A DNA stretch of 64,000 nt from Anthoceros angustus (GCA_010909165.1 MU008159.1:620001-684000), one strand, 5' to 3'. Shown: positions 23,101 to 59,496, counted from the stretch's first letter. The notes: generated by a model not told the origin, from the letters alone. Made by a program: numbers and translations.

Positions 23101-25536
23101 TTGCGAATGCACTCCTTACTAATCAGTTTGAGTTGATAGGCCTTGAGGTGTATCGGTGATTTGGTGGTTGGGCATCCTGTTAACCGTGACTTATTAGCAA
23201 GCAAAGCTGTTGGGGACGATGCCAATTCAGAACCAGCTTTGAATCGTATCCTCAGAATTCTACTGCAAACACCGCATCTCAGTGTCTGCATTGCTGCTGA
23301 ATACGTCTTCAGGTCTTTCTGCCAGGCAAGATTCTAAGCATATTGCATATGGAGGAGAATGTTGGGTGGACCTATGGATTCTGTGCTCAGTTACGATCTT
23401 AAAGGTGGTTATCTTATTCCTAGTGTTTATTTCTTTCAGGGTAATCCAGATGGTCAGACGATGCTGGCTTCCACCATAACACCATTACCCCAGGCCAACC
23501 ATCGAAATAGTAAAGTTGGTGATGAAGAGAAGCACATATCATTTGGCAGGTACGCAAGAGGAGTCTAATTTGAGATCAATCCTGCCTATTCTTGGAACTG
23601 TCATCACATGGATCTCATGACAGGTTGTTCTTGCAGCATGCTAGTTCGAGCCTTAATCTCCAGTGATGGTCAGAGCAGCCTTGAGGTAGTTATTGCTAGC
23701 AACCTGGGCAGTTTTTTGTCAAATTGTCTGGAGTATATTACCATGAATTGAAATGTAGCCGTTGTCATGAAATCCTGCAGGCAAGCTGCAGAGCTGCAAG
23801 TGTTCTGTCTCACATACTTAAGGACAATGTACAGTGTAAAGAAAGGGTAAGTTGCAGTTGTTGCAGACTGTTAAACATAGCCTCTGTTGCGTGTGCAGTT
23901 GTTACCGTAGTTGTTGGCACTTTGCACAATGGTTAAATTCTGATACAGCTGTGTTGGTAGGTTCTCCGCATACCACTTGAGATTCCAGCCTCTGCCCTGG
24001 CGCCGCCTGATTTATTGATGCCACGGTGTTTAAGGTACCTGGCAGAAGCTGCTCCAACATCCCTGTACAACGCACCTGCCCAAACTGGACAGGTTTGGCT
24101 GCAGCCTGTTATACTACGGCTGTTAGTGACATGGCTAGCTGATTGTCCATCAGCAGTTTCTGCTTTCCTGGAGCCAACTCCACATCTTCCTTACTTGGTA
24201 GAGTTGATGTCAAGTCAAGGTTCCCCAGCAAGTGTTCATGTAGCTGGTCTTGCAGCTGTTCTATTGGGGGAGTGTATTGTTTACAATGACGGCGAAGGAG
24301 CCAAGGATGCCTCTATGGTCGTAGATGTAATCAGTCAAAGAGTGGGTCTTACTTCTTACTTTTCCAAATGGGATCAGATGCAGAAAAGTCCTTTATTTGT
24401 ATCAGCAGCGTCAGTGTCACGTCTCCCAAAACCTTTGACAAGATCAAATGCAGCTAGTGCAGCTGCCGGTGATGGATTAGTTACAATGCTGGTAGACAAA
24501 CCGCAACTACCCCAGAATCCTGTATCAAATAATGGTCATCCGGAGCCTGTGGTGACTACCTTCTATGATGCAGAGTTTGTTGCGGCCATCAGGACTCTAG
24601 AACCAGTAGTAAGAGAGCGGATAGTTGAACTGTTTGCCCACCCCAAGAGCAGAGCCAATGTTGAAGTGCAAGGTTTTGATAGAAAGGAGGGTGAGCAAGA
24701 CAAAGATTACATCGAAAGACTTAGAGCTGCATTGAGAAGTCAAACGCAGGAACTGCAGGTATGTCACAGGTCTCGGCAAGTGGTTATCAGGTGTTGGACA
24801 GTTGACGGAATTCTTTCATGATCGTGTGCTTCTGTTTCGTTTGAGAGTAGCATGTTTCTGGTTTTGTAAATCTAGTCTCAGCATCAACGAATCTGTGCTT
24901 CATTCTTCTTGTCAGGATCTGCTGGAACGGAATTCTGCATTAGCGGGTGATTTGTTAGTCAGCAGTTCCGTTGGAGAGGATGACGGAGGAGCGGGTGATG
25001 AGGCCTTGAAGGCCAACTTAGCTAGTAAAAGGGGCTCGGTGCGCGGGCCTGGAGACTCTTTTCTATCCAAGACAGAGGCTGAAACCTTGAAGCAGCAGCT
25101 TCTGGAGTATCAGCATGCAGCTGAAGAGGCAAACAAAGAAAAGCAACAAGCGGAATCAGAGATGGCCTCATATAAGCAGCTTCTGGCCAAACAAGAGACT
25201 GATCTACAGAGTCTGTCGGCAGCATATAACTCACTCGAACAGGACAACTACATACTGGAAGGCGAAGTTAAGAAGCTGCGTAAGGCTTTAGAAGATGGAG
25301 GCATCTCCCTTGGCCCGTCTGAGGAGCAGCTGCAAGCAGCACGTGAGGAGGGGCGACAAGAGGCTATCAAAGACAGCGAAGCAGACTTGAGTGATCTGAT
25401 GGTTTGTCTGGGCCAAGAGGAGAGCAAAGTGGAGAAATTGCGAGAAAGGCTAGAAGAGCTTGGAGAAGATGTTGAAGCTTTGCTCCAAGGTATAGGCGAG
25501 CCTGAACCGGAAGGAGACCGGGAAGATGATGGCTAA
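20159..25536 (+). CDS. GC6: Golgin candidate 6 / p115-Uso1 vesicle tethering protein, multi-exon
   Basis: Exons read LERISNGVLADDRRSAMAELQ; FPILMSVLREEREDLDMV; EIQKIVVFEGAFERIFNIVREEG; DCLELLNNLLR; LLVTWLADCP; and a C-terminal coiled coil SLSAAYNSLEQ...DLMVCLGQEESKVEKL. ATG at 20159, TAA at 25534-25536. Confidence 0.95.
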
Positions 25537-26046
25537 ACCCTTTCTGCGATATGTATAGCTGGATGGCATCACTTGGTTGCACAACCTCTTGAGGTGCAGC
25601 TTATCGATAATCAGGAGAAGTGGTTGATTCTGCGATCACTTGTATATTATCACAACTGTCTGCTCTTGACCTAACCAATTTTTGCCTCCACAATGCTGTA
25701 ATCTTGTTAATAAAGGAGGATTCTTGCCAGTGCTATCGTTCCTACAGTGATACTCAAACGGGGCCACGTCAAAAACCATCCTGGCCTAATGTGCTTGTCG
25801 TGAGACATCCTCAAGACTGCACTTTCTATCGGCGTTGAACTTTGCCTTCATCAACTCCCCTGTCCGAGACGTGAATGCTAAGAGTAAAATAGTGAGAAAA
25901 GAACACGCCAAGAAGCAGGAGTGGCCTTATGGCTTCCTTTGGAGGCCAACGCTCAGCAACAGGTACCGCGACTCGCCGGCGACGCGATCGATTCCTGCGG
26001 AAAGTATTTCCGTATCCAACCCAACCACAACAAACCAGCATGGAAC

Positions 26047-26200
26047 AACATTGAACGTGTAGAAACCCAGACAACATTGAACGTGGAGAAACCCAGACAA
26101 CATTGAACGTGGAGAAACCCAGACAACATTGAACGTGGAGAAACCCAGACAACATCGAACGTGGAGAAACCCAGACAACATCGAACGTGGAGAAACCCAG
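26047..26200. repeat. 26-bp minisatellite AACATTGAACGTGGAGAAACCCAGAC, about 6 copies (re-copied at about 28.6, 28.87 and 29.77 kb)
   Basis: Directly visible; lies between the 3' ends of GC6 and RPL23A. Confidence 0.95.
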
Positions 26201-26693
26201 AAGTGATGCCTGACCTTCGTCACCGCCCACAACAGGTTAGTGACAAAGAAAAGGTCAAGCAAATATTCCTAAACTCATGCACAATTGCGTGCCCTCATTA
26301 TCCTGCAGGAACCGCGTTCTGAGTGTCAGGCAGCTGCAATTGCATGGGGATCAAAGAGCTCCAGTCCAGCAACCGACTGCACTCCCTATCGGCGTTGGAA
26401 AATTCTTCCATTCAACGACTCCCCTGTCCGAAACGTGAAAACTGAAAGGAGAAGACTGAGCCAAGAACACAGAGCAAAGCAGAAGTCGCCTCAGGCCTTA
26501 AAACCAACGCGCAGCAGCGGGAACTGCGCCTCGCCGGCGACGCAATCGATTCCCTGCGGAAGAACTTTCGTTCTAGGATAGAACCCAAGCACAACAACCA
26601 GCATAAGACAACGTTGAATGTGGACAGACCCATAATTGCTGCTTGTGACAAGCTCCGTCCAAAACTGAAGAATACAGTGCTCGGCAACAAAAC

Positions 26694-27328
<635 letters not shown>

Positions 27329-27395
27329 GGAAGCCGGTCGCAGCTCGGCAGGCTTGCTGGGAAGGAGGGTTTAAAGGACTAAGAATTCAGAACTT

Positions 27396-28119: not shown

Positions 28120-31100
28120 GATGGAATCACTTGGTTGCACAACCTCTTGAGGTGCAGCTTATCGATAATCAGGAGAAGTGGTTGATTCTGCGATCACTTG
28201 TATATTATCACAACTGTCTGCTCTTGACCTAACCAATTTTTGCCTCCACAATGCTGTAATCTTGTTAATAAAGGAGGATTCTTGCCAGTGCTATCGTTCC
28301 TACAGTGATACTCAAACGGGGCCACGTCAAAAACCATCCTGGCCTAATGTGCTTGTCGTGAGACATCCTCAAGACTGCACTTTCTATCGGCGTTGAACTT
28401 TGCCTTCATCAACTCCCCTGTCCGAGACGTGAATGCTAAGAGTAAAATAGTGAGAAAAGAACACGCCAAGAAGCAGGAGTGGCCTTATGGCTTCCTTTGG
28501 AGGCCAACGCTCAGCAACAGGTACCGCGACTCGCCGGCGACGCGATCGATTCCTGCGGAAAGTATTTCCGTATCCAACCCAACCACAACAAACCAGCATG
28601 GAACAACATTGAACGTGTAGAAACCCAGACAACATTGAACGTGGAGAAACCCAGACAACATTGAACGTGGAGAAGACAACATTGAACGTGGAGAAACCCA
28701 GACAACATCGAACGTGGAGAAACCCAGACAACATCGAACGTGGAGAAACCCAGAAGTGATGCCTGACCTTCGTCACCGCCCACAACAGGTTAGTGACAAA
28801 GAAAAGGTCAAGCAAATATTCCTAAACTCATGCACAGAGACAACCACAACAAACCAGCATGGAACAACATTGAACGTGTAGAAACCCAGACAACATTGAA
28901 CGTGTAGAAACCCAGACAACATCGAACGTGGAGAAGATGATGGCTAAACCCTTTCTGCGATATGTATAGCTGGATGGCATCACTTGGTTGCACAACCTCT
29001 TGAGGTGCAGCTTATCGATAAACCAGGACCACAACACACCTTTAACGGGAGCCATGGAAGCCGGTCGCAGCTCGGCAGGCTTGCTGGGAAGGAGGTTTAA
29101 AGGACTAAGAATTCAGTCGAGATAGCGAAAAGAGTCACACGAATTGCCAACAACTCTGAAGTGATCCGGGTCCCTAGAAGAGCTTGGAGAAGATGTTGAA
29201 GCTTTGCTCCAAGGTATAGGCGAGCCTGAACCGGAAGGAGACCGGGAAGATGATGGCTAAACCCTTTCTGCGATATGTATAGCTGGATGGCATCACTTGG
29301 TTGCACAACCTCTTGAGGTGCAGCTTATCGATAATCAGGAGAAGTGGTTGATTCTGCGATCACTTGTATATTATCACAACTGTCTGCTCTTGACCTAACC
29401 AATTTTGCCTCCACAATGCTGTAATCTTGTTAATAAAGGAGGATTCTTGCCAGTGCTATCGTTCCTACAGTGATACTCAAACGGGGCCACGTCAAAACCA
29501 TCCTGGCCTAATGTGCTTGTCGTGAGACATCCTCAAGACTGCACTTTCTATCGTTGAACTTTGCCTTCATCAACTCCCCTGTCCGAGACGTGAATGCTAA
29601 GAGTAAAATAGTGAGAAAAGAACACGCCAAGAAGCAGGAGTGGCCTTATGGCTTCCTTTGGAGGCCAACGCTCAGCAACAGGTACCGCGACTCGCCGGCG
29701 ACGCGATCGATTCCCTGCGGAAAGTATTTCCGTATCCAACCCAACCACAACAAACCAGCATGGAACAACATTGAACGTGTAGAAACCCAGACAACATTGA
29801 ACGTGGAGAAACCCAGACAACATTGAACGTGGAGAAACCCAGACAACATTGAACGTGGAGAAACCCAGACAACATCGAACGTGGAGAAACCCAGACAACA
29901 TCGAACGTGGAGAAACCCAGAAGTGATGCCTGACCTTCGTCACCGCCCACAACAGGTTAGTGACAAAGAAAAGGTCAAGCAAATATTCCTAAACTCATGC
30001 ACAATTGCGTGCCCTCATTATCCTGCAGGAACCGCGTTCTGAGTGTCAGGCAGCTGCAATTGCATGGGGATCAAAGAGCTCCAGTCCAGCAACCGACTGC
30101 ACTCCCTATCGGCGTTGGAAAATTCTTCCATTCAACGACTCCCCTGTCCGAAACGTGAAAACTGAAAGGAGAAGACTGAGCCAAGAACACAGAGCAAAGC
30201 AGAAGTCGCCTCAGGCCTTAAAACCAACGCGCAGCAGGAACTGCGCCGGCGACGCAATCGATTCCCTGCGGAAGAACTTTCGTTCTAGGATAGAACCCAA
30301 GCACAACAACCAGCATAAGACAACGTTGAATGTGGACAGACCCATAATTGCTGCTTGTGACAAGCTCCGTCCAAAACTGAAGAATACAGTGCTCAACAAA
30401 ACCTATATTATGCCTATCTTGTTTGCTACGTCCAAAGCGTCGTAGTCTGTGGTAAGCCTCACGTAGGCCTTCTTTTTCCGTCAGGCCTGCACCACAAACA
30501 GCAATCCACGTCACAGTTCAGTCCATGCCAAAGCAACCGGATAGCGGGGTATGAATCAAATAAGTTGCAAAATAACTATCCGAGAATAAACGCAGTTAGT
30601 CGGAGAAGAAACCTTCAACCCTGTGACACACAGTTGCATACCATCAAAGAACTTGAAAGTAGAGGAAGTCCACAGTTCATGCAATCCGCAAGCCCGAACT
30701 GCAGGACGATCTAGGGCAAGATCGAAAATATATCAACACTTACAAGAGAATCGCTCAAAGCAGAAGTCGCCTCAGGCCTTAAAACCAACGCGCAGCAGGA
30801 ACTGCGCCGGCGACGCAATCGATTCCCTGCGGAAGAACTTTCGTTCTAGGATAGAACCCAAGCACAACAACCAGCATAAGACAACGTTGAATGTGGACAG
30901 ACCCATAATTGCTGCTTGTGACAAGCTCCGTCCAAAACTGAAGAATACAGTGCTCAACAAAACCTATATTATGCCTATCTTGTTTGCTACGTCCAAAGCG
31001 TCGTAGTCTGTGGTAAGCCTCACGTAGGCCTTCTTTTTCCGTCAGGCCTGCACCACAAACAGCAATCCACGTCACAGTTCAGTCCATGCCAAAGCAACCG

Positions 31101-32400
31101 GATAGCGGGGTATGAATCAAATAAGTTGCAAAACCTAAATTGTAACAAACGACACACACCTGATGAGAGTGTTAACCTTCTTCGCCTGGATCTCGTACAT
31201 CTTTTTCACAGCATCCTTGATTTTCTTCTTGTCCGCCAAGACATCCACAATGAAGACGAGGTGTTGTTCTCCTCAATCTTCTTCATTGCTGACTCTGTGG
31301 TCAAGGGGTACTTCAGCACCTGGTACTGATCCAGCTTGTGCCTAGGTGGTGCGCTGATCCTGGGGTACTTCGCTTACGGTCCCTCTTCAGAGTCTTGGGC
31401 CGATGGAACGTGACTGAAGGCCGCTCTTTCTTCCATTTCTTCAGCGGAGCCACGCTCTTCAGCGCCTTTGCTGCCTTAGTGGCTTGCGCCTTCGGTCGAC
31501 CTTCCCACCTGCATCCCGGACCATCAGTCCCCGAAGCCGCACCACAGCAAATCGATAAACCAGGACCACAACACACCTTTAACGGGAGCCATGGAAGCCG
31601 GTCGCAGCTCGGCAGGCTTGCTGGGAAGGAGGGTTTAAAGGACTAAGAATTCAGAACTTTAGGGTTTTTGAGTGGAGCGGATCGGGATTTTCATTCTGTG
31701 GGACCCGCTTCGTAGGGCTGCTCACAATGTCACAAACTTGTCCACTTGGCCTGCGTCTGAATCTCCGAACCGATAAAAGCTTCGCGCGTGCCAAGTCCTC
31801 CGTGGCATGTCATGCCTATGTCCTCCCCATAGCCTTGGTATACGCACTCTTGTACAATACTTGTATGTCCCGAGTATGTAGCATACATTACCTTACATTC
31901 ACTACCATGGCATTCTCCCCGTATCGTAGCGAATTGTCTTCCATGTACATATGTTTCAAACTTTCAAACTAGCGGGGAGAGGGGCATGTTGGAGGAGTGT
32001 GGGATCGGGGAGCAGGGAGCGGGCTGCCATAGGTGATCCTCAAATGTTGCAAACAAGGTCCCTTGTTGTTGGGAACAACGCCATCAGAATTGAAATGTTG
32101 AATGTCACGTAGCGACCTCGGCGTTTTGCATGCATGCCTGCAAGCAATCTTGCAAACATGGTCTACCGCACTCACCAATTCAAACGGTCTTGGAAGGACA
32201 GCAATCCACCAAAAGACATATGAATCCCGCAACTTTGGTAAGTGAACATATGTATCAGCTCGGTGGCGTTACAGTGAGGTACACTGCGCTTGTCCCTCCT
32301 GCTGCTCGAAGCCTGCAACAATGGCGTTGACAGCTCTTTCGGCATTACACTGGTATTTTGGACAGACGAATTCAATACGTGGATACAGCTGGATGGAAAG
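28120..32400. repeat. 4.3-kb patchwork of re-copied local segments (sources 25.45-28.13 kb and 32.49-33.10 kb)
   Basis: Nine direct-orientation junctions, each at a 7-10 bp microhomology (listed in findings). Deleting about 28130-32395 restores a continuous sequence. Confidence 0.9.
30964..31592 (-). pseudogene. Frameshifted near-identical copy of RPL23A (26694-27328) inside the patchwork
   Basis: Same introns and exons, with single-base losses in G runs (e.g. GACGAGGTG vs GACGAGGGTG). Possibly an assembly artefact. Confidence 0.7.
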
Positions 32401-33886: not shown

Positions 33887-34244
33887 CAAATGACTATCGG
33901 CATATTTTAGTTTGTACATTGGCCAGTACGATACAAATGACTATAAGCATGTTTCAGTTTATACATTGGCCAGTGTGATACAAATGACTAGAAGCATGCT
34001 TCAGTTTGTACATTGGCCACTGCGATGTAAATGACTATCAGCATATTTCAGTTTGTACATTGGCCACTGCGATGTAAATGACTATCAGCATGTTTCAATT
34101 TGTATATTGGCCAGTGCGATACAAATGACTATCAGCATATTTCATTTTGTACATTGGCCAGTGCGATGCAAATGATTATCGACATGTTTCAATTTGTACA
34201 TTGGCCAGTGCATGTTTCGAGTTTGTACATTGGCCATCGCACTG
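33887..34244. repeat. 47-bp minisatellite, about 7.5 copies (TTTCAGTTTGTACATTGGCCAGTGCGATACAAATGACTATCAGCATA-like)
   Basis: Period of 47 measured from TGCGATGTAA at 34021 and 34068. Confidence 0.93.
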
Positions 34245-34947
34245 TGAAATGAGACCTAACAGATCACAATACAGAGGCAGTTAACTGATCTTCCTACCGT
34301 AGTACATTAGATTGGTGCCCAGAGGCGTTTCCTTCTATTTCAGTTGGAAGTACCTGTCTCACCTCTCTATCACTCCCATCCCTCCATAACTTCATCATTC
34401 TCATCTCTCCTTTTCTTCGCTTTATTGCGTCTCCTGTCCCTGCTCCCACATCTAGGCACTAGAATAAACACTTGATGTCAACACATATGCTGCACCATCT
34501 GTCTTGTCTAGCCAGCGGGCTTCATCAAAAGCATGGTGTCCCACCTCAACGTTGCTCCACTTTTGACAAACACCCAACGGAGTGTGCCAAACAGCAGCAT
34601 TCGACAATAGATGGATTTTCCTTACTAGAGCTAATGCTTGGTCAAGTTCTCCTGCTCGGCCTAGTAGTCAGCCGTGGGAATGATGCTATATTGTTTGCTC
34701 ATGTCCTCAAAGTACTGTAGCCCTAGTCCAAGAGACCAGTATGACTGCATACTGTAATATACTAAGGAACGTCATAGCTTCCGGCGTCTCTTCCGTCCTC
34801 TCATTTTCAAAACCAGGCCAAACAGCTTCTCACAGTTTCCTTGACAGGAATGCCCTGCGATGAGCGCACTCCATGTGAGAATATTCCTTCTGAGCAATTC
34901 CTAAAATTACCTGCTGTGCATCAGGCATGCTACCGCACTTCCCATAC

Positions 34948-34967
34948 ATCGCACTGGCCAGTGCGAT
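34948..34967. promoter_or_regulatory. Perfect 20-bp palindrome ATCGCACTGGCCAGTGCGAT upstream of the fumarase-like gene
   Basis: Self-complementary sequence seen directly; a regulatory role is inference. Confidence 0.4.
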
Positions 34968-35207
34968 ATTCTCGTACCTGGAGACACCCTGTTAGCATGG
35001 CACTCCGGGTGCACACTCCATGGCTCTCCAAGGCAAGGGTACATTTTCTCTGCTGGCGTGGGCAAATTCTTTAGGGTTCATCGAGCCCTTCCTCGTGACA
35101 TTCAAGAACTGAAAACCGATAGGAGAAGCTCGTTCGAGCCAAGAAGAGGGCAAGAAGAAACAAGAGTTGCCTGATGGCTTGTTGCGAGGCTGCTATTGCC
35201 GAGGGGG

Positions 35208-36716
35208 ATGGCTGCTGTGGCCAGGATGCGGGTCATTCTCAGCTCCCCCGCAGCAGCAGCAGTTCGCTGCTGCAGCCTCGCCAGCGCTCACAGTTCCGAT
35301 TCCAATCCGGATCTCGGCAGGAGACTCTACTCAGACCGACGCCACATGAGCGTGATGCAGGAGAGCTTCAGAGAGGAGTGCGACAGCATGGGGACCGTCA
35401 AAGTCCGGGCGGACAGGTACTGGGGAGCACAGACGCAACGATGCCTACAGAACTTCGAGATTGGTGACCCGGAGAGAGAGCGCATGCCGGAGCAGATCGT
35501 CCAGGCCTTCGGCGTGCTCAAAAAAGCCGCAGGCAAGGTGAACATGGAGTTCGGGCTGGACCGCGACATCGGCGCGGCCATCATGCAGGCCGCGCAGGAG
35601 GTGGCGGACGGCAAGCTCGACGCCCACTTCCCCCTCCCGGTCTGGCAGACCGGAAGCGGCACCCACAGCAACATGAACGCCAACGAGGTGATCGCCAACC
35701 GGGCCACCGAGCTCCTCAAGGGCTCCAAGCCGGTGCATCCAGGAGAGCACGTCAACATGAGCCAGACCTGCCACAGCACCTTCCCGACGGTGATGCACAT
35801 CGCGGCTGTGATCGAGATCAGATCCCGGCTCCTCCCCAAGCTCCAGGCCCTGTACGAAGCCCTGGCCGCCAGAGCCGAGGCCTTCAAGAATGTGATCAAG
35901 ATCGGGAGAACCCACATGCAGGACGCGGTGCCGCTCACCCTGGGGCAGGAATTCAGCGGCTACACGACCCAGATCAAGTACGGGATTGCGAGAATCAAGT
36001 CCGCTCTCCCGCGGCTGTACCAGCTGGCTCCGTCCTCGACCAAGGATTTCGACAAGAAGATCGCGGCCGCCATAGCCGCCGAGACCAACATCCCCTTCGT
36101 CACTGCCCACAACAGGTTCGAGGCCCTGGCGGCTCACGACGCGTTTGTGGAGGCGAGCGGGGCCTTGCTGACTCTTTCCACCTCGCTCATGAAGATGGCC
36201 AACGACATCCGGCTGCTGGGCAGCGGGCCTCGGTGCGGGCTCGGGGAGCTCCTGCTGCCGGAGAACGAGCCCGGGAGCAGCATCATGCCGGGGAAGGTGA
36301 ACCCGACCCAGTGCGAGGCGCTCACCATGGTCTGCGCGCAGGTGATCGGCAACCATGTGGCCATCACGGTGGCGGGATCCGCCGGCCACCTCCAGCTCAA
36401 CGCCTTCAAGCCGCTGCTGGCCAACGCGCTGCTGCAGGCCCTGCGCCTCACCGGCGACGCGGTTGATTCCTTCCGGAAGAACTGCGTCCTAGGCATCGAG
36501 CCCAACATCCCCCGCATCGCACAGAACCTCAGCCAGTCCCTCATGCTGGTGACGGCGCTCAATCCGGCTATAGGCTACGACAAAGCAGCTCGTGTCGCAA
36601 AGAAAGCCCATGCCGACGGATCCTCCCTCAAGGACGCTGCCCTTGCTCTCGGGTTCCTCACATCGGCGGAGTTCGATGACCTTGTGGATCCTGGAAAAAT
36701 GCTCTCTCCTTCCTGA
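35208..36716 (+). CDS. Intronless class II fumarase-like protein (502 aa) with remodelled active-site region and a putative N-terminal targeting peptide
   Basis: [68 protein letters not shown]; plant-type sequence throughout. SQSSNDTFPT is replaced by [10 protein letters not shown] and GGTAVGTGLN is absent. Confidence 0.93.
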
Positions 36717-37110
36717 CAGAGACAGGGCCAAGCCACTTTTTTCTCAACAAATACTCCACAATTGCGAGCCCTGATATCCTGCGGGAATGGCATGCAGCTG
36801 TTGTGGCATGGGGAGCCAAGAGCTCCGCTGTGGCAACCAACAGGAGACAGTATGGAACATGGAGAAATCCAGAATAGATGCTTGTGCCCAGCGCCGTTCA
36901 AAACTGAAGAATAATACAGTGCTCAACTACTCCGCAATTGTGTGCCCTCATCTCCTGCGCCAATCGCATTCAGAGTGGCAACCAGCTGCAATTGCATGGG
37001 GACCCAGGAGCTCCACAACGTTAACCAACAGGAAGCACCATGGAACACTGAGAACCCCGGAATTGACGCTTGTGACCAGCTCCTCAGAAGACAGTGCTCA
37101 ACAGTAAACC

Positions 37111-37737
<627 letters not shown>

Positions 37738-38786
37738 GGAAGCCGATCGGCGACGCCAAAGTTCAGGGCAGGCGGGTTTCGGATTCCGGGGTTGGCACTC
37801 TTCTTTATGCCATATACCCGCGTGGTAGCCTAATAACTCATGGTAATCGTTTTTTATCTAATAGTGGATTGTATAGTGCATCTTGGGTATATGCTAATTG
37901 CCACGTGGCCCTCTTTTTTCTTTTTTTCCTTTTCTTTTTTTTCTTTTTTCTTTTTTCTTTTCTTTTTTGACACTTGGCTCTCCATGTTCAAATCCAAAGG
38001 GGCTATTGCGGATACCGTAGACGTGAAAGCTTGGGAGGAAGGTTTCTTTCAAGCCGTCGCATTCCAGAGGGAATTTAACTCTCAAAGTTGGTTGAAGTAG
38101 GGACAGATTCAAGAAGGATCCGATCCCAATTCAAGCTTGGGAGGAGCAAGAAGGATCAAGATTGGTTGAAGTAGGGACGAAGCAAAATTATTCTCCTCGG
38201 AGTGTCATAAAGGCGGCGTATCGGCTCAAGATATAGAACGGTCGATGGAATATGACTTGTTGTTGGATATCACCCAACGGTGTTAAATAATGAGGAAGTG
38301 CCGTCGTCATATGGTCGGCACATTAAAGACTTCGTGGTTCATTGAATATCAACAAATAATTGGAAAGGCAATCAGCCGTAATTTTCACTTATTCGCGGTC
38401 AAGAGGAAGTCAAGAGGAAGAGGATGGTTAGGGCAGTTGTTACATTTGGTTTCAGTGCATAACTTGAACAGGGTTGCGCGCAAACCTTGAAGCCTGCACC
38501 TTGCTTCGGTGGCGGCCTTTCCAGTTATAGCGGCGTCAGCGACAGCGCATCCACACCGGCATCACCAGCAGACAAGAGCGAACACGCCGGGCACAAGCGG
38601 AATTTGTAGCGAATCCAGCAGTATCAGGCGGGAGGAAGTTGTCGTCTTCGTGTGGGCTCCAATTTCCAAGGTTGGCTACACCATTTGTAGGCAATTGTCT
38701 GCAATTCTCACTTAGATTGCAATTCATGCTCTTCCACTAACGTCGTTGAGGGGACCTGACGTTTCTTGTGTGTGGAGGAATAGGGA

Positions 38787-44421: not shown

Positions 44422-46455
44422 ATGACGGGCTTTGGCACGGGTCCATTGCCTGTCAGAAGTGCCATCTACGTGAGCAACCTCCCTCCCGGGACGGATGAGG
44501 TGCTTCTGGCTGAGCATTTCGGGCAGATTGGATTGATCAAGGTACGTCGGTCCTGGCGTGCAGCCGCAGTCAAGATTTGTGTGATGCAGGATCTGGATGC
44601 CGTGTGACCTATTTTTGTGGCTGTGGCGTGCCATGCCGTCTCATGTTGCGCAAATCTTCGCAGAAAGACAAGCGGTCGAATAGACCTAAGATCTGGATAT
44701 ACCGGGACAAGGCCACAAATGAGCCTAAGGGAGACGCAACTGTCACGTACGAGGACCCGCATGCAGCGTCTGCGGCAGTGGACTGGTTCAACAACACGGA
44801 CTTTCGTGGTAGTGTGATATGTGTCTCGATTGCAGAGTCGAAGAATAAGGAATCGTCTGAGCCGCCTCCGCCACCTCCCGTGGAGGAAGCCCCTGCTGAG
44901 GTGGATGCGGAGGAAGACCCGTTGGCAGGGGAGGCAGGGTTAGCAGGGAAAGGTCGTGGCCGTGGGGAGCCCGGCGCAAAGGCAGCCTGGCAACAGGAGG
45001 GGGATTGGCCATGTCCAAATCCAAGGTCTGTGATGACTTTGGTGAGCAGCTCAAGATTCTCCTTGAACCCTATGTGTGTTGGTCCAGTGAAGTGCGATGT
45101 GGTTGGAGTTCTTATGCCAGTCTGTTGAAGGGCAAGTGTGATGTCATATGAAAGCATCGTGGTTTTTTCCTGGGCGTTGGTGGGGACACTTTGGACTTAC
45201 GGTGGCTTTCCTGATACTTTTGTACATGTGTAGCTGTGCGAACATTAATTTTGCTTTCCGAGGCGTTTGCAATCGGTGTGGAAGTGCACGGCCCTCGGGT
45301 GGTTCTGGCGGTGGAGGTGGGGCTGGAGGAGGTCGTGGTCGCGGGAGAGGAGCAGTTGCAGGTTTAGAAGGTGCCGGTCGTGGTGCACGAGCGCCTGGAG
45401 GCCCTCCCGGCCTGTTTGGTCCGAATGACTGGAACTGTCCCATGTCAGTAAATATTCAGCAGAGATTATGCGTCAATGTCTGACAACTCCTTGTGTTTTG
45501 TTCTCTGATGGTGTGGGTTTGCACATGGACAGGTGTGGGAATATCAATTGGGCAAAGCGCACAAAATGCAATATCTGCAACACCACGAAACCTGGTCACA
45601 ACGAAGGTGGTGCAAGGTATGAAGTAATGCAGGAACCCCGGGGCATCCTAAAGAAGAGTTTTGGTGTGTTGTGTCCCAATATGCTATATCCGGCAAACCA
45701 TAATCCCCGTCTGGCCTCTGCAGGGAAGGAAGGGCTGGTGGCTATAAAGAATTTGATGAAGCAGAGATTGAGGAGACACGTAGAAGGCGGAAGGAGCTGG
45801 AAGAAGTGAGTTGCTCGGTTGTGTTACTGTCTGTATTAAGTGGCTTAAAATCTCCATCTCTTTATGATTGTGAGCTTGTGCTCATTGCTGTTGTCAGGAT
45901 GATGGGGAAATGTATGATGAGTTTGGCAATCTGAAGAAGAAGTTCAGAGTGAAAGCTAAACAAGGGGAGGCTCATATCCAGCAGGCGGTGTCAGGGGTTG
46001 GGAAGGCAGGGTGGGACGTTGGGGAGTTTGGTGTCACGGAATCTGGCAGAATGAAAGAAAGAAGTAAGGACAGAAATGACAAGGATGGCGATTGGGACAC
46101 AGAGAGAAGTCGAGAAAGGAGTGGTGACTACGAGGATGGAAGAAATGGCCATCGGACTTCCAAGGATGGAGATCTGCACAACGATGTGGAGAAAGATGGA
46201 AGTCGCGACAGAGAGAGACCAAAGGATCGCGATCGTTCGTGGCATGAAGCAGAAAGAGGCAGAGATGTAGACAGAGATGACTACAGAGAGAGAGAGCGAA
46301 GCCGAGACCGTGACCGAGGAAGAAACAACGACAGAGATCGAAGGGACAGGTACAGGGACCTGGACCGTGCCAGGGATAGAGGAACTTACAGGGGCCGTGG
46401 TGTTGAGTCGGACGGAGGAAGGGACAGGCTCCGAGTTCGTGATAGGTTGGATTAG
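44422..46455 (+). CDS. TAF15: TAF15/FET-family RNA-binding protein (RRM + 2 RanBP2 zinc fingers + RD-rich tail); exons 44422-44541, 44664-45025, 45234-45443, 45533-45616, 45724-45805, 45898-46455
   Basis: IYVSNLPPGTDE; KIWIYRDKATNEPKGDATVTYEDPHAA; WQQEGDWPCPN/CANINFAFRGVCNRC; FGPNDWNCP/CGNINWAKRTKCNIC; MYDEFGNLKKK. Confidence 0.95.
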
Positions 46456-47194: not shown

Positions 47195-49868
47195 TTAATG
47201 CTCACTGCTGGAGCTGGATCCACCTAACAGGAAGCCCGGCAGGCGAGACTCTAGGATCGCCAGCAGGGCTCTCTTACTGGACCTCATGAAGATTTCTTCA
47301 GATGAGCACAGCTGGCCAGCGTTCAGACGCAGGGCTGCCTCCACCAGCTGACCCCTAAGCCATTGGCAGAGAATGACACCACTGGCAGCCATGCACTCCT
47401 TGTACAGGGGGAGATAGGCTACAGTGACCTGTAGCTGCAATGGCAGCTCCTGCAGATGCAGAGGGGACGACCCTCGTTTCAGAGCCCTCATCACATTGAG
47501 GTGATGAGCTTGACCGAGGAGACGACCGCGCATGAAGGCTTCCTCTGACCACTCTGCTTGGAGAAATGCTCGCAACTCCGGTGTGATGGCTTCGTCATCC
47601 GACTTAGCGATGGTGTCCGCAATCTTGTAGGTTGCCTCCGGATTGTTGAGGAAGTCAGCTTGCAGGAGGAAAGCTATGCCTTTGAGAGAACCGCCACTCC
47701 GTTCTCCAGCTGCTTTCAGTATCTCTGCACTGAGAGTCTGCAGAACATGCCGAGGCACATGACCAAGTAGGTAGGCTGCAATGTCAACACGACTGCTGGA
47801 TGCAGCTGCTGTGAGTGCAAGGCACAGCTCCATGTCCTTGCATCCCCGCTGGACAAACCACTGCACCACCTGCATGCACCCCCGCTCTGCAGCTCTCATC
47901 AACGGTCCTAGAAATGCCTCCGCATTGCCTTCATCAACCAGGCACTCCATGGTGCTGATCTTGCTGTAATGTGAGGCGAAACCCAGGGCTAAGTCCACAT
48001 CCAGCTCCACATGATTTTGTTGAGCAATCTGCAACAGACGAAAGTTCCCACCTCGAACCTTTTATCGACTTGCTGGGTTACATCCAATTTAAAGAATGCA
48101 TAACATACAAAACAGGCTGTCCTTTAAACGTACCTGGAGCAGGATGCGAACAAGCTCTGTACTTCCAAAACGAGCAGCCTCAAGAAAGCATTGGTTCACA
48201 TTATCTGCACCACCCTCCACAAGCAAACCTAACAAACCCTGCATGGCACTGGCAGCAATCCCTGTGGCCCACCCAGGGTCGATGGCACTGGAAAACAGGG
48301 TCAAGGGAAAGCAGGCTGCATCAAACGCTTCCGTATAGTCTTTGGTTGTCAAACGATCCCCAGCCAGCTCCAAAAACCTTTTGAAAGCCATGAGCTGGAG
48401 GCGTGCCTCGCTGACAGAGCCTTGGCTCACTCCACCACCATCCTCCCCCTCACTCCTGCCTCTCCCGCGGGAATGGGAGCCAATACACTTGAGAGCCCAC
48501 TCGGTGAACCTCTGCACCTTTGCTGCAGCCTCAGCCTTGAGGACCTCATCGCCATTGCACTCTTGCAGTCTCTCCCGTAACCTACACAATGAACTCCACC
48601 TGACTGATCAGATTCTGCCCCAGATCGACGGCCAGGAAACCAACCATCTCCGTGGTCACCGTATGCTTTACCTGGAAGCCTTCACATCAAGCTTCCACCA
48701 CCAAAATGATTCCGACAGGCTAAATACAGAGTAACTGAACCAGGAAAGCTTGTTTCCTACAAATGATAAGCCAGCAATCAGTCCATCCTATCTCATGATC
48801 GATCACTTCACTGGCTGGCACCGCACACAGATCGAACATTCAACCGTTGCAGGTGCGGCCAGGCAGGCGCTGCTTCACTGTCTCAGCAGGTGCTTCAGGA
48901 AGCAACCAAACCATTCCAACCATGGCAGTGCAACTGCATTACACTTTTTTCTCATGTCCCGCATGTCCCCCATCACCACGACGACCACACCCCACCCAAC
49001 CCAACCCAAAGCCCAAAGCCCAAAACCCCAAACCCACCCCTCCCTCACCTTCTGTTCATACCTTTGTGCCATCACAGTGACGGTATCAGCCAAGCTCATG
49101 GTCCGACTTCTGCAAGCCGACACACAGGAGGCCAGAAACGACGTCCTGAGAGCCGCCCGGGTGAAGTCCTGAGCCCCCGCCTGGATGAGCCTCTCTATCA
49201 GCCTGGTGGCGGCCAACAGCTCCTCCTTGGTGCTCAAAAACCACACCGAGTCCAGAGCGATGCACAGCCCGTCGTTCAGCCTCTGCCCATCGGCCAGGGG
49301 GATGAAACTCTCGGCCATGGCCCAGTCATGCGTACTCACGGCCAGCTGGAACGACCTCCCGAGCTCGGCCTTGTCCCGCCTCCCGCTGGCCCGGGCCTCG
49401 TCCTCCCGCTTCTCCCTCAAGCTCACCACCCCGACCCGCCCGTCTCTACAACCCACCTTCCTCTCCTTCTCCCTCCCCAGGCTCGCCTCCTCCGCCCGCC
49501 CCACACCCTCTCGCTGGGCCTGGCCTCGTCCGCGCCTCCCGCAGGCTCACGCCAGACGCCGGCCGCTCCACCTGCAGCATGGGCACCCCGCCCTCGCACC
49601 CCTTCAATTCCCTCCTTCTCCTGCTCCCCAGCACCACCCACTTCCACTTCCACTCCTCCTCCTCCAGCATGCCCATGTTCCACCTTCTCCCTCCCCGGGT
49701 GCTGGCCACGCACTCCGGGGTGTGGGGATGGTCCACGTTGTGCCGCCCACCACACACTCCCAGGTCGCACTCGAACGCATGCCGCACCCCGTCCCCCACT
49801 CCTTCCCCGTCTTCCTCCATCGGAACCAGCGACACCGCGTCCATCAGCCCGCCGCTTCCTCTCATCAT
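47195..49868 (-). CDS. SKIP35: Ankyrin-repeat protein SKIP35-like; exons about 49868-49062, 48581-48134, 48028-47195; apparent frameshift near 49505
   Basis: ELGRSFQLAV..CIALDSVWFLST..DFTRAALRTSFLASCVSAC; KVQRFTEWALKCIG; FDAACFPLTLFS; DVDLALGFASHY; FLGPLMRAAERGCM. Start codon is uncertain (49868 or 49844). Confidence 0.9.
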
Positions 49869-57267: not shown

Positions 57268-59496
57268 TCAAGTCTTCATATCAATACGGAGTGGGGGTAT
57301 TGGTGAATCATGAGGTGGGGGCGGTGGTGGCGTCATGACCATTGGAGGAGGCGGTGATGTTGATGCACTTCCGAGTTCTGGTCCACCATAATACAAGAAA
57401 GTTCCTTGAAGACCATCACCGCGATCTCCTTGAATAGCGAAGAGAATGTCGTAGCGAGTTGGATCTGTCTGCAACAACTTGGTAAGCACATCTACCTTAT
57501 TTGGTGTTACTTGACTTGCATCTTCACTGTCGGTTTCATAAAACTTCAAATCATGTTGCCACGCAGGTAAGTCTTGGATAGTTTTAGCTGTTAAGCACTC
57601 TGAACCCTTCTTACCATTTCCCATTTGCGTAAAGCCATCCACAGTGGTTGTGACCAGTCCACCCCACTCCAATCTATTTGCACTAGAGTCCTGCATCATC
57701 CCTTGCGTAAATATGGAGCTTGGCCAATAACCTATTTTCTGCCCTTGAATCTTAAACCACCAATCACCATCAACTGTTTCCTGTAAATTCCACATTGCAA
57801 ATTATAACTTTAAGAGCTATTCATTGGTGGATCAGAAAGAATAGATCACCAATATATGCATTGATTGAGAAACTTACCTTTGCAATTATAAAGTTGAGTG
57901 TAACACCATGAAAGTTGTTTACAAATCGGCCGCCAAGAATCCAAGATGATGCTATCTGAACGAAACCCATGCAACGCAGATTATAACATCCTTGGAATAT
58001 TGATTGCACCATTTCTTCTAGAGAGGTTGTAGAAATATTTGCAGTAGCTTGGGCAACTTGGGTCCCCTCCTGAATTTTAAGCGGGGGTACAACATAATCA
58101 TCCGGTGGCGGCACCGCTGGAATTGGAGGGGGCGCTGATGATGATGGAGGCTGAATTGGAGTTGATGGTGCCGGTGATGCTTGTGGTGGTATATCAAGCT
58201 CGAACTCTTGCACCTACAAATATGATTAAATAAGACAAGTTATTCTATTACATGCTCTTCTAACACGGACATACATCATTTAATTACTTTAGAACAACTA
58301 ACTTACCATTCTAACATGTACATAAGCACTTCATCACATTAGAGCAATTAACTTACCGTCCAATAAATAAACAAACGTGTATTAGTGTCAATTTTTTCGC
58401 CGTATGTAGTGGGATCTACCTTCATTAGTCATATTTGATCACCAATTAATATCAAATAACTGTTAGAAACATAATGCATGAAATCAAATACTATGAATAA
58501 AACAATCCAACAAACTTGGTACACATACCATCCATCCAGCTTCAGCTGAATTATAATTATGATTTTGAGTTGCTGTCACCCATATTTGAGAGATTGATGC
58601 ATCTGACAGGCCTGGCGTGGGACTCCATAAGCTTAAACCTGCTGAGGCTCCATAATAATTTCCATACAATTGTGCTATAGCATACTGCATCAAAAAGAAG
58701 AAAATATTAGCACCATATTTCATACTGACTATGCAAAATTATAGAATAAAATGATTACTGCATTAGTTCGACATAATAAACACATACATAGGTGTCTCTG
58801 CCCGAGATATCTTTATCAGTGTTTAATTGACGCATATCCTGATTCCGGGCCATCCTAATGCTTGCATGCCTCCATTCTTGCTCAAGTTCCTTCTCAAAAA
58901 CACGTTCCACTGGAATTGTGCCCTTAGGACAACTGCCAACTTCTTCATGGAAAACTTGGTATTTTGGTGTACTTTCTTCACTTTCCGTAAAAAGTATTTC
59001 ATCCATTTTTTTCAGCTTCTAAAGTATCCAAACAACATAGCACATACACACAACTCTTCAATTATTATACCTGAAAACCATTTTATTCACAGACAAAATG
59101 TACCGTAAGTTAAACATAGCCACACTTACGTACCTTGAAAAAATCTTCTCTAATTGCAGGATGCTGCAATGACAATTGATCCTCTATTTTTACGCAATCA
59201 ATTATACTCCCATCTGAAAGCTAATGATGTAACACATGTATAAAATCATGCACAACATAGTGGATTGACTATACAATTACTCTCGTTATCTATGAAAAAT
59301 ACATCATATAGAAATTAAAATGGCTATGCGTACAACTTTCCGATTCAAATTGCAAACATGATATATTCACCTGATGTGACTCTACAAAAGGGCGATTGAT
59401 CATGGACAAGTCCTGGAAGGATGAATCAGCATTTGCGCTCAAAGACACATAAATTATAAGCATACAAATGACTTGGATAATATAATATCGTGCCAT
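57268..59496 (-). CDS. Neprosin-domain secreted protein (signal peptide + activation peptide + peptidase G3-like domain) with Pro-rich insert and tail
   Basis: Signal peptide MARYYIIQVICMLIIYVSLSANA; LSDGSIIDCV; CPKGTIPV; SISQIWV..NSAEAGWM; small exon VDPTTYGEKIDTNTRLFIYWT; GCYNLRCMGFVQ; GDWWF..IGYWPSSIF; EWGGL; TQMGNG; LYYGGP. Confidence 0.9.

Follow-up and report, generated by a model that had tools for sequence, protein, structure and literature searches.

RESULTS

Gene content of the locus

The window, by which we mean the whole 64-kb stretch of DNA that was analyzed, from the seed-free land plant Anthoceros angustus, contains on its plus strand an ORF resembling the Krebs-cycle enzyme fumarase at 35208 to 36716, hereafter ORF Q. 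It lies in one open frame extending from 35196 to 36716, in which the ATG at 35208 starts 502 codons, none of them broken. The features in and next to ORF Q are as follows.

35174-35176 (+), out-of-frame upstream ATG, 34 nt 5' of the ORF Q start, opening a 97-codon ORF that overlaps this start
35208-36716 (+), ORF Q, intronless class II fumarase-like ORF, stop codon included (ORF listing, Pfam, and structure-database match)
35208-35369 (+), leader of ~54 residues (translation and homologue alignment)
35649-35663 (+), TGSGT substrate-binding motif, kept (homologue alignment); the next invariant Gln is His153 in ORF Q
35736-35789 (+), C1 region, rewritten (alignment and codon comparison)
35904-35927 (+), C2, GRTHMQDA with the catalytic Thr-His, residues 233 to 240, kept (alignment)
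36021-36053 (+), pocket loop, shortened (alignment, codon comparison, and model)
36273-36317 (+), C3 or SS loop, residues 356 to 370, GSSxMPxKxN with the catalytic Ser, Lys, and Asn, fully kept
37111-37737 (-), RPL23a (uL23), intron-containing and convergent with ORF Q, match span 37061-37749 (Pfam and homology)

The protein belongs to the aspartase/fumarase superfamily, with a Pfam Lyase_1 domain at residues 62 to 381 (E = 1.9e-95; 320.3 bits, gathering cut-off 27) and a FumaraseC_C domain at residues 447 to 499 (E = 1.8e-23). This is the class II architecture, and an AlphaFold2 model has the matching three-domain fold. The best solved relative, human fumarate hydratase (3e04; E = 4e-183), aligns end to end over the mature protein. 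Identity to streptophyte fumarases is 65 to 75%, and the top database match, a canonical fumarase of another organism (P0002), is 72 to 75% identical. Against the NCBIfam equivalog model TIGR00979 (fumC_II), ORF Q scores 651.0 bits, below the cut-off of 664.75, as opposed to 766.1 for P0002 as control. The initial annotation of this DNA described an uninterrupted, GC-rich ORF of 502 codons resembling fumarase along its length, a description with which the ORF listing, the Pfam domains, the 63% G+C content, and the 3e04 alignment all agree. Apart from relics of ORF Q itself, the 64-kb window holds no second fumarase sequence, and an Rfam scan of the whole window gave no match.

The G+C content of ORF Q exceeds the window background of ~50%, and its GC3 of 0.84 (with 0.9 retained in its core region) is close to the 0.80 of the adjacent RPL23a, a highly expressed gene, the other ORFs of the window ranging from 0.36 to 0.79. 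High GC3 was considered as proof of expression and rejected, as it indicates merely that the composition has not drifted to the background. The locus is flanked by further, ordinary intron-containing plant genes, namely, those for an Uso1/p115 vesicle-tethering protein (24015-25536, +), an RRM protein whose tail is rich in Arg and Asp (44577-46455, +), and an ankyrin-repeat protein (47195-49504, -), and a neprosin-domain ORF (57268-57795, -). About 1 kb upstream of ORF Q there is a 47-bp tandem repeat of 6.9 copies (33887-34211), a 20-nt palindromic piece of which recurs at 34945-34970, 240 bp upstream of the ORF Q start.

Leader and upstream ATG

An N-terminal extension had been singled out in the initial annotation. 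It is present but proves to be an ordinary presequence-like leader, only ~10 residues longer than the leaders of homologues, and its start (MAAVAR) resembles that of P0002 (MAAAAR). The leader is rich in Arg, Ala, and Ser, has no acidic residue ahead of D31, and resembles a mitochondrial presequence, suggesting that it targets the protein to mitochondria. Two in-frame methionines, Met51 and Met54 (window 35358-35369), lie directly ahead of the mature fumarase domain; speculatively, initiation at either might yield a leaderless, presumably cytosolic form. The out-of-frame ATG at 35174-35176 would be relevant solely if it is included in the 5' untranslated region.

Replacement of the substrate site

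All of the C1 ligand contacts have been replaced. At the A site, the SSND motif reads TCHS (S187T, S188C, N189H, and D190S; human FH positions 186 to 189), encoded by ACC TGC CAC AGC at 35766-35777. The columns of this motif are invariant in 113 plant fumarases, and the Ser-Ser-Asn(-Asp) that typifies C1 is absent from ORF Q. The neighboring HPND motif, which belongs to the B site of fumarase (PDB entry 2fus, by its title; Rose & Weaver, as listed in PMC3109261), reads HPGE, its His being kept and its Asn-Asp codons having become GGA GAG (N179G and D180E). In total, six codons of C1 have been rewritten by eight or more nucleotide changes, and the 12 scaffold residues of the region stayed the same.

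The second lesion is in the pocket loop, where GGTAVGTGLNT has undergone a clean, in-frame deletion of 27 nt, leaving ORF Q nine residues shorter than every homologue and without the GGTAVGTGLN signature. The excised residues correspond to A278 to R286 of human FH and include the equivalents of Ala231 and Gly282. The flanks of the deletion are also altered (Q275P, G276S, G277S, and G280D), such that Gln-Gly-Gly has become Pro-Ser-Ser. With positions converted through a full-length alignment to human FH and the numbering of PMC3109261, the altered residues are human N178, D179, S186, S187, N188, D189, and A274 to G276.

In contrast to C1 and the loop, the remaining catalytic motifs are intact, with the Thr-His of C2 and the complete C3 signature both in place. 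At the overall rate of the ORF itself, the absence of any change among the 38 conserved columns of the C3 block (residues 335 to 374) is unexpected (P = 1.6e-4), and replaced positions amount to 6 of 18 in C1 as opposed to 0 of 30 in C2 plus C3 (Fisher exact test, P = 0.0015); these contrasts between C1, C2, and C3 are post hoc, the region having been flagged for that very pattern. On these points the initial reading holds: C1 is rewritten (35736-35789), the loop is shortened in frame (36021-36053), and the GRTH and SS-loop motifs are kept.

The altered positions coincide with residues that contact the ligand. Seven residues lie within 6 Å of the ligand, namely, Thr96, Ser98, Ser139, Ser140, Asn141, Ala231, and Leu358, each with 100% conservation across Rickettsia, human, E. 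coli, and yeast (PMC3169413). Four of the seven are altered in ORF Q (P = 0.011), three by substitution and the fourth, Ala231, by deletion. In human FH, S187L, N188S, G282V, Q185R, and H180R are active-site disease variants (PMC3109261, Table 2), and the listing of the first three supports a loss of normal activity in ORF Q, which appears no longer to work as a standard fumarate hydratase.

Substitutions also occur away from the active site. Of 274 near-invariant columns, ORF Q deviates at 41, whereas none of the 113 plant fumarases does so at more than 13. Roughly 17 of these departures fall within the two lesions and ~24 are scattered, so that the clustering at the active site claimed in the initial annotation applies to C1 and the loop but not to the changes as a whole.

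Predicted structure

A single alignment served to build AlphaFold2 monomer models of ORF Q and P0002, which are of equal confidence (pLDDT of 81.5 and of 81.8 for the canonical control; pTM of 0.81 for ORF Q), and Foldseek matches the ORF Q model to 5d6b and 3e04 (human FH) with a TM score of 0.86. Conservation extends to the fold, to the helices that form the tetramer, and to the Thr-His of C2 and the Ser, Lys, and Asn of C3, and what has been excised is the pocket-lining GTAVGTGLN loop. In the ORF Q model, the deletion reduces the link joining two long helices from ~19 to ~8 residues, and the corresponding loop is unstructured in the P0002 control monomer model, with no helix removed. In these models, the deletion thus appears to have excised a loop and left the fold intact. 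Confidence dips at C2 and the SS loop in both models; low pLDDT at C2 was considered as a sign of damage to ORF Q and rejected, as the canonical control dips likewise.

Nearest relative and the origin of intronlessness

P0002 is a 501-codon, single-exon gene (locus L001:6001-7506) on a 13-kb Logan contig (SRR33208241_6345), where its neighbors EAP30, PTH2, and arginyl-tRNA synthetase all contain introns. In a careful tree, P0002 is the sister of ORF Q (support 82/72), and the two share the rare residues F115, A389, and L395. Although similar to ORF Q in its exon structure and leader start, P0002 retains SSND, HPND, and GGTAVGTGLNT, passes the fumC_II cut-off (766 bits), has a lower GC3 (0.63 versus 0.84), and sits on a branch half as long. 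The terminal branch of ORF Q, at 0.8 to 0.9, is about 10 times the family median of ~0.1. ORF Q nests inside the streptophyte fumarases, and horizontal transfer was rejected on this ground.

The organism behind SRR33208241 is the closest in the database, yet not close. It also holds the closest RPL23a (91% identity), on a contig (L085) that stops 550 bp past this gene. A protein word-index search returned nothing above 72% identity to ORF Q and nothing above 82% to P0002, exact look-ups of four possible ORF Q start variants in the protein database returned nothing, and a metagenome scan returned nothing above 62%. As calibration, exon 2 of the window RPL23a finds nothing above 91% in the same protein database, indicating that neither this species nor its close kin are covered and that blanks for ORF Q are uninformative about absence. 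Likewise, no orthologue with the lesions of ORF Q occurs in this protein database, from which the species itself is missing, and the literature search yielded no paper linking hornworts or Anthoceros with fumarase variants.

Plant fumarase genes are normally intron-rich, as had been assumed from the outset and as is seen in Capsella (3.3 kb), Ceratopteris (45.6 kb), and Closterium (2.9 kb), in each of which the gene is split into many exon pieces. ORF Q, a single ORF, lacks introns where these homologues have them, and it had been interpreted as a retrocopy of an intron-rich parent. As it stands, this interpretation is not supported by comparison with P0002: the closest relative is intronless as well, and synonymous sites between the two are saturated, indicating that the loss of introns is older than the ORF Q copy and says nothing about how this copy arose. 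Inspection by eye disclosed no poly(A) or A-rich tract in the first 285 bp past the stop (36717-37000) and no target-site duplication or direct repeats flanking ORF Q. Judging from the two sequences, intronlessness is probably a lineage trait rather than a mark of the ORF Q copy, and the simplest inference is that a single, old cDNA-mediated replacement took place in the common ancestor of ORF Q and P0002.

Tandem duplicates as internal controls

ORF Q and RPL23a are arranged tail to tail, with stop codons ~400 bp apart, and a segment containing both has been duplicated in tandem at 25.9 to 31.6 kb.

25936-26586 (+), duplicated unit A, relics of ORF Q around a 26-bp minisatellite, adjoining the RPL23a copy at 26634-27340; codons 402 to 432 at 25936-26082 and 26497-26586, codons 297 to 303 at 26214-26238
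28494-28791 (+), duplicated unit B, relics of codons 402 to 452 (28494-28640) and 297 to 303 (28767-28791)
29655-30859 (+), duplicated unit C, relics at 29655-29723, 29934-29958, 30248-30298, and 30737-30859, adjoining the RPL23a copy at 30907-31604
26634-27340, 30907-31604, and 37061-37749 (-), three tandem RPL23a copies, with a fragment at 30346-30535 (homology)

In total, there are six relic copies of codons 402 to 432 and three of codons 297 to 303. The 26-bp minisatellite, ACAACATTGAACGTGGAGAAACCCAG, recurs with each duplicated unit in arrays of ~6 copies (26045-26201, 28603-28754, 28864-28935, and 29765-29921), wedged amid ORF Q relics that are out of their original order.

The relics of codons 297 to 303 carry H301 and R303, residues otherwise private to ORF Q, indicating that the divergent ORF Q sequence predates the local duplication; the relics cover neither C1 nor the loop. 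Since the duplication, the relic lineage has accumulated nine assignable amino acid changes within codons 403 to 431, plus indels, whereas ORF Q has accumulated none (P = 0.004, from small samples of 29 codons and 3 indel events). The RPL23a copies, whose protein search covered exon 2 only, provide a second control. The copies at 26.6 to 27.3 kb and 37.1 to 37.7 kb both have an intact exon 2 (dS of 0.25 and dN of 0.015 between them), and the copy at 30.9 to 31.6 kb is a pseudogene that has lost a single base pair at each of three places within 348 nt. Had ORF Q gathered frameshifts as fast as this dead copy, ~13 would be expected in its 1,506 nt, and there are none. Small as these samples are, both controls agree in direction with the remaining evidence.

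Selection or decay

Between the coding sequences of ORF Q and P0002, pS is 0.74 (saturated) and dN is 0.185, for a dN/dS of ~0.06 or less, a value that averages over the whole path to P0002 and within which the most recent stretch of the branch is not separable. The saturation of synonymous sites implies that the split between the two is ancient. Allocated to branches, dN is 0.125 to 0.138 for ORF Q and 0.047 to 0.060 for P0002, a two- to threefold difference; together with the ~24 departures outside the lesions, this faster rate points to relaxed constraint.

The sequence hallmarks of a pseudogene are nevertheless missing: the 502 codons are open, with no stops or frameshifts, and dN/dS is not near 1. 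All three indels that distinguish ORF Q from its homologues are in frame, and away from the two lesions, amino acid replacements are more conservative than random ones (mean BLOSUM62 score of +0.17 versus -0.42). In neutral simulations with substitutions only, the probability that a frame of this length remains free of stops is 0.018 at K = 0.13, rising to 20 to 52% of runs at K of 0.02 to 0.05. The low dN/dS, the in-frame indels, and the decay of the neighboring relics while ORF Q stayed intact thus uphold the earlier view that random decay is unlikely, and the check on dN/dS that had been proposed does not bear out a young, decaying copy.

DISCUSSION

A probable maintained fumarase paralogue with a changed role

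The best reading of the sequence comparisons is that ORF Q is a long-lived, fast-evolving member of an intronless, mitochondrial-type lineage of class II fumarases, most likely paralogous to a canonical fumarase elsewhere in the same genome. Having stayed intact amid decayed duplicates, it probably still functions as a gene, but in a different role. We put at roughly 0.5 the probability that selection maintains ORF Q as a divergent fumarase paralogue that has ceased to be a standard fumarase and acts either as a lyase with an altered pocket or as a subunit donating C2 and C3. The case for maintenance derives from the intact ORF, the low dN/dS, the in-frame indels, the GC3, the mild replacements, the uneven distribution of selection over the active site, and the relic and RPL23a controls. 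Counted against it are the relaxed constraint, the upstream ATG at 34 nt, and the situation of the gene in a duplication- and repeat-rich locus.

The alternative that survives best, although we consider it less likely, is that ORF Q is a recently disabled duplicate, i.e., an ordinary fast-evolving fumarase that was then knocked out by the loop deletion and the C1 changes, too recently to have gathered stops or frameshifts. The 41 of 274 departures from near-invariant columns, a dN two to three times that of P0002, and the 651.0 bits obtained against a fumC_II cut-off of 664.75 would all be natural in such a gene, as would its position in a rearranging, repeat-rich region and behind an out-of-frame upstream ATG. 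In the simulations, stops were escaped in 20 to 52% of runs at K of 0.02 to 0.05, and the database contains no transcript-derived protein of the ORF Q type, a weak point given that the species is not covered. However, uniform neutral drift would not produce the contrast between at least eight changes in six codons of C1 and none in the 38 C3 columns and C2, and every indel is in frame. Moreover, since a duplication dated by RPL23a to a dS of ~0.25, ORF Q has acquired no changes in codons 403 to 431, as opposed to nine in the relics, and a GC3 of 0.9 persists in its core.

It is improbable that ORF Q is still a working fumarate hydratase that tolerates an odd pocket, perhaps orthologous to P0002 and with no other class II fumarase beside it in its genome. 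The catalytic His, the Ser, Lys, and Asn of the SS loop, and TGSGT are intact, the leader resembles a presequence, and the window has no second fumarase except the relics; SRR33208241 likewise yielded no fumarase more than 72% identical to ORF Q and no second, ORF Q-like paralogue, which would fit orthology. Such a hydratase would nonetheless have to operate without Ser139, Ser140, Asn141, and Ala231, which lie less than 6 Å from the ligand and are 100% conserved from Rickettsia to human (PMC3169413), when single substitutions at two ligand-shell residues, and at Gly282 of the deleted loop, are human disease variants (PMC3109261). In addition, comparison of the two genomes gives a higher pS for ORF Q and P0002 (0.74) than for RPL23a (0.58), which hints weakly at paralogy.

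An assembly or sequencing artefact mimicking active-site changes is scarcely credible, given that multinucleotide substitutions and a clean 27-nt deletion are unlike homopolymer slips, that the whole of ORF Q is ~30% diverged from every known fumarase, and that its private H301 and R303 are independently present in the relics of the window.

How C1 could vary while C2 and C3 are constrained

Three subunits together make up each active site of human fumarase (PMC5806193). A first subunit contributes C1 and the pocket loop, a second C2, and a third C3, and two mechanisms would then fit a protein in which C1 is free to vary while C2 and C3 are constrained. ORF Q might assemble into homotetramers with lyase or hydratase activity, whose enlarged and re-lined pocket would let the His/Ser machinery act on another ligand. 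Alternatively, it might enter canonical tetramers as a subunit that lends its working C2 and C3 to its neighbors while its own C1-dependent sites are dead, in which case it could tune or regulate fumarase activity through the number of working sites. We propose only tentatively that ORF Q is one of these two, either an enzyme with lyase or hydratase activity on a different acid or a C2/C3-donating, C1-null subunit of mitochondrial fumarase tetramers. We know of no description of such an enzyme or such a subunit among eukaryotic class II fumarases.

Relation to known fumarases and their relatives

Class II fumarases (plant FUM1, human FH, and E. coli FumC; EC 4.2.1.2) share with ORF Q their architecture, predicted fold, TGSGT, C2, C3, and leader, but they keep SSND, the Asn-Asp of HPND, and the nine-residue loop where ORF Q has Thr-Cys-His-Ser, Gly-Glu, and no loop. 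A precedent for the loss of catalysis is delta-1 crystallin, a duplicated member of the superfamily that kept its fold and tetramer and became a structural protein of the lens. In argininosuccinate lyase, active sites are assembled from several subunits, and mixed tetramers therefore contain mixed sites, the basis of intragenic complementation. Both differ from ORF Q in superfamily branch and in role. Within plants, Arabidopsis FUM2 is a cytosolic paralogue with a new physiological role that lost its presequence and kept its introns and canonical active site. Like FUM2, ORF Q would be a lineage-specific plant fumarase duplicate, but unlike FUM2, it keeps its leader and rewrites its pocket.

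Implications

The fumarase gene in this plant lineage appears to have shed all of its introns long ago, and the lack of introns should not, by itself, be equated in this genome with a recent retrocopy. The active site of class II fumarases is among the most conserved known, with a ligand shell that is identical from Rickettsia to human, and ORF Q, intact despite the replacement of just these residues and with its catalytic loop preserved, amounts to a natural experiment in how a multisubunit active site can be dismantled. If expressed, ORF Q would either bring a new substrate specificity to the aspartase/fumarase superfamily or be the first pseudo-subunit of a fumarase.
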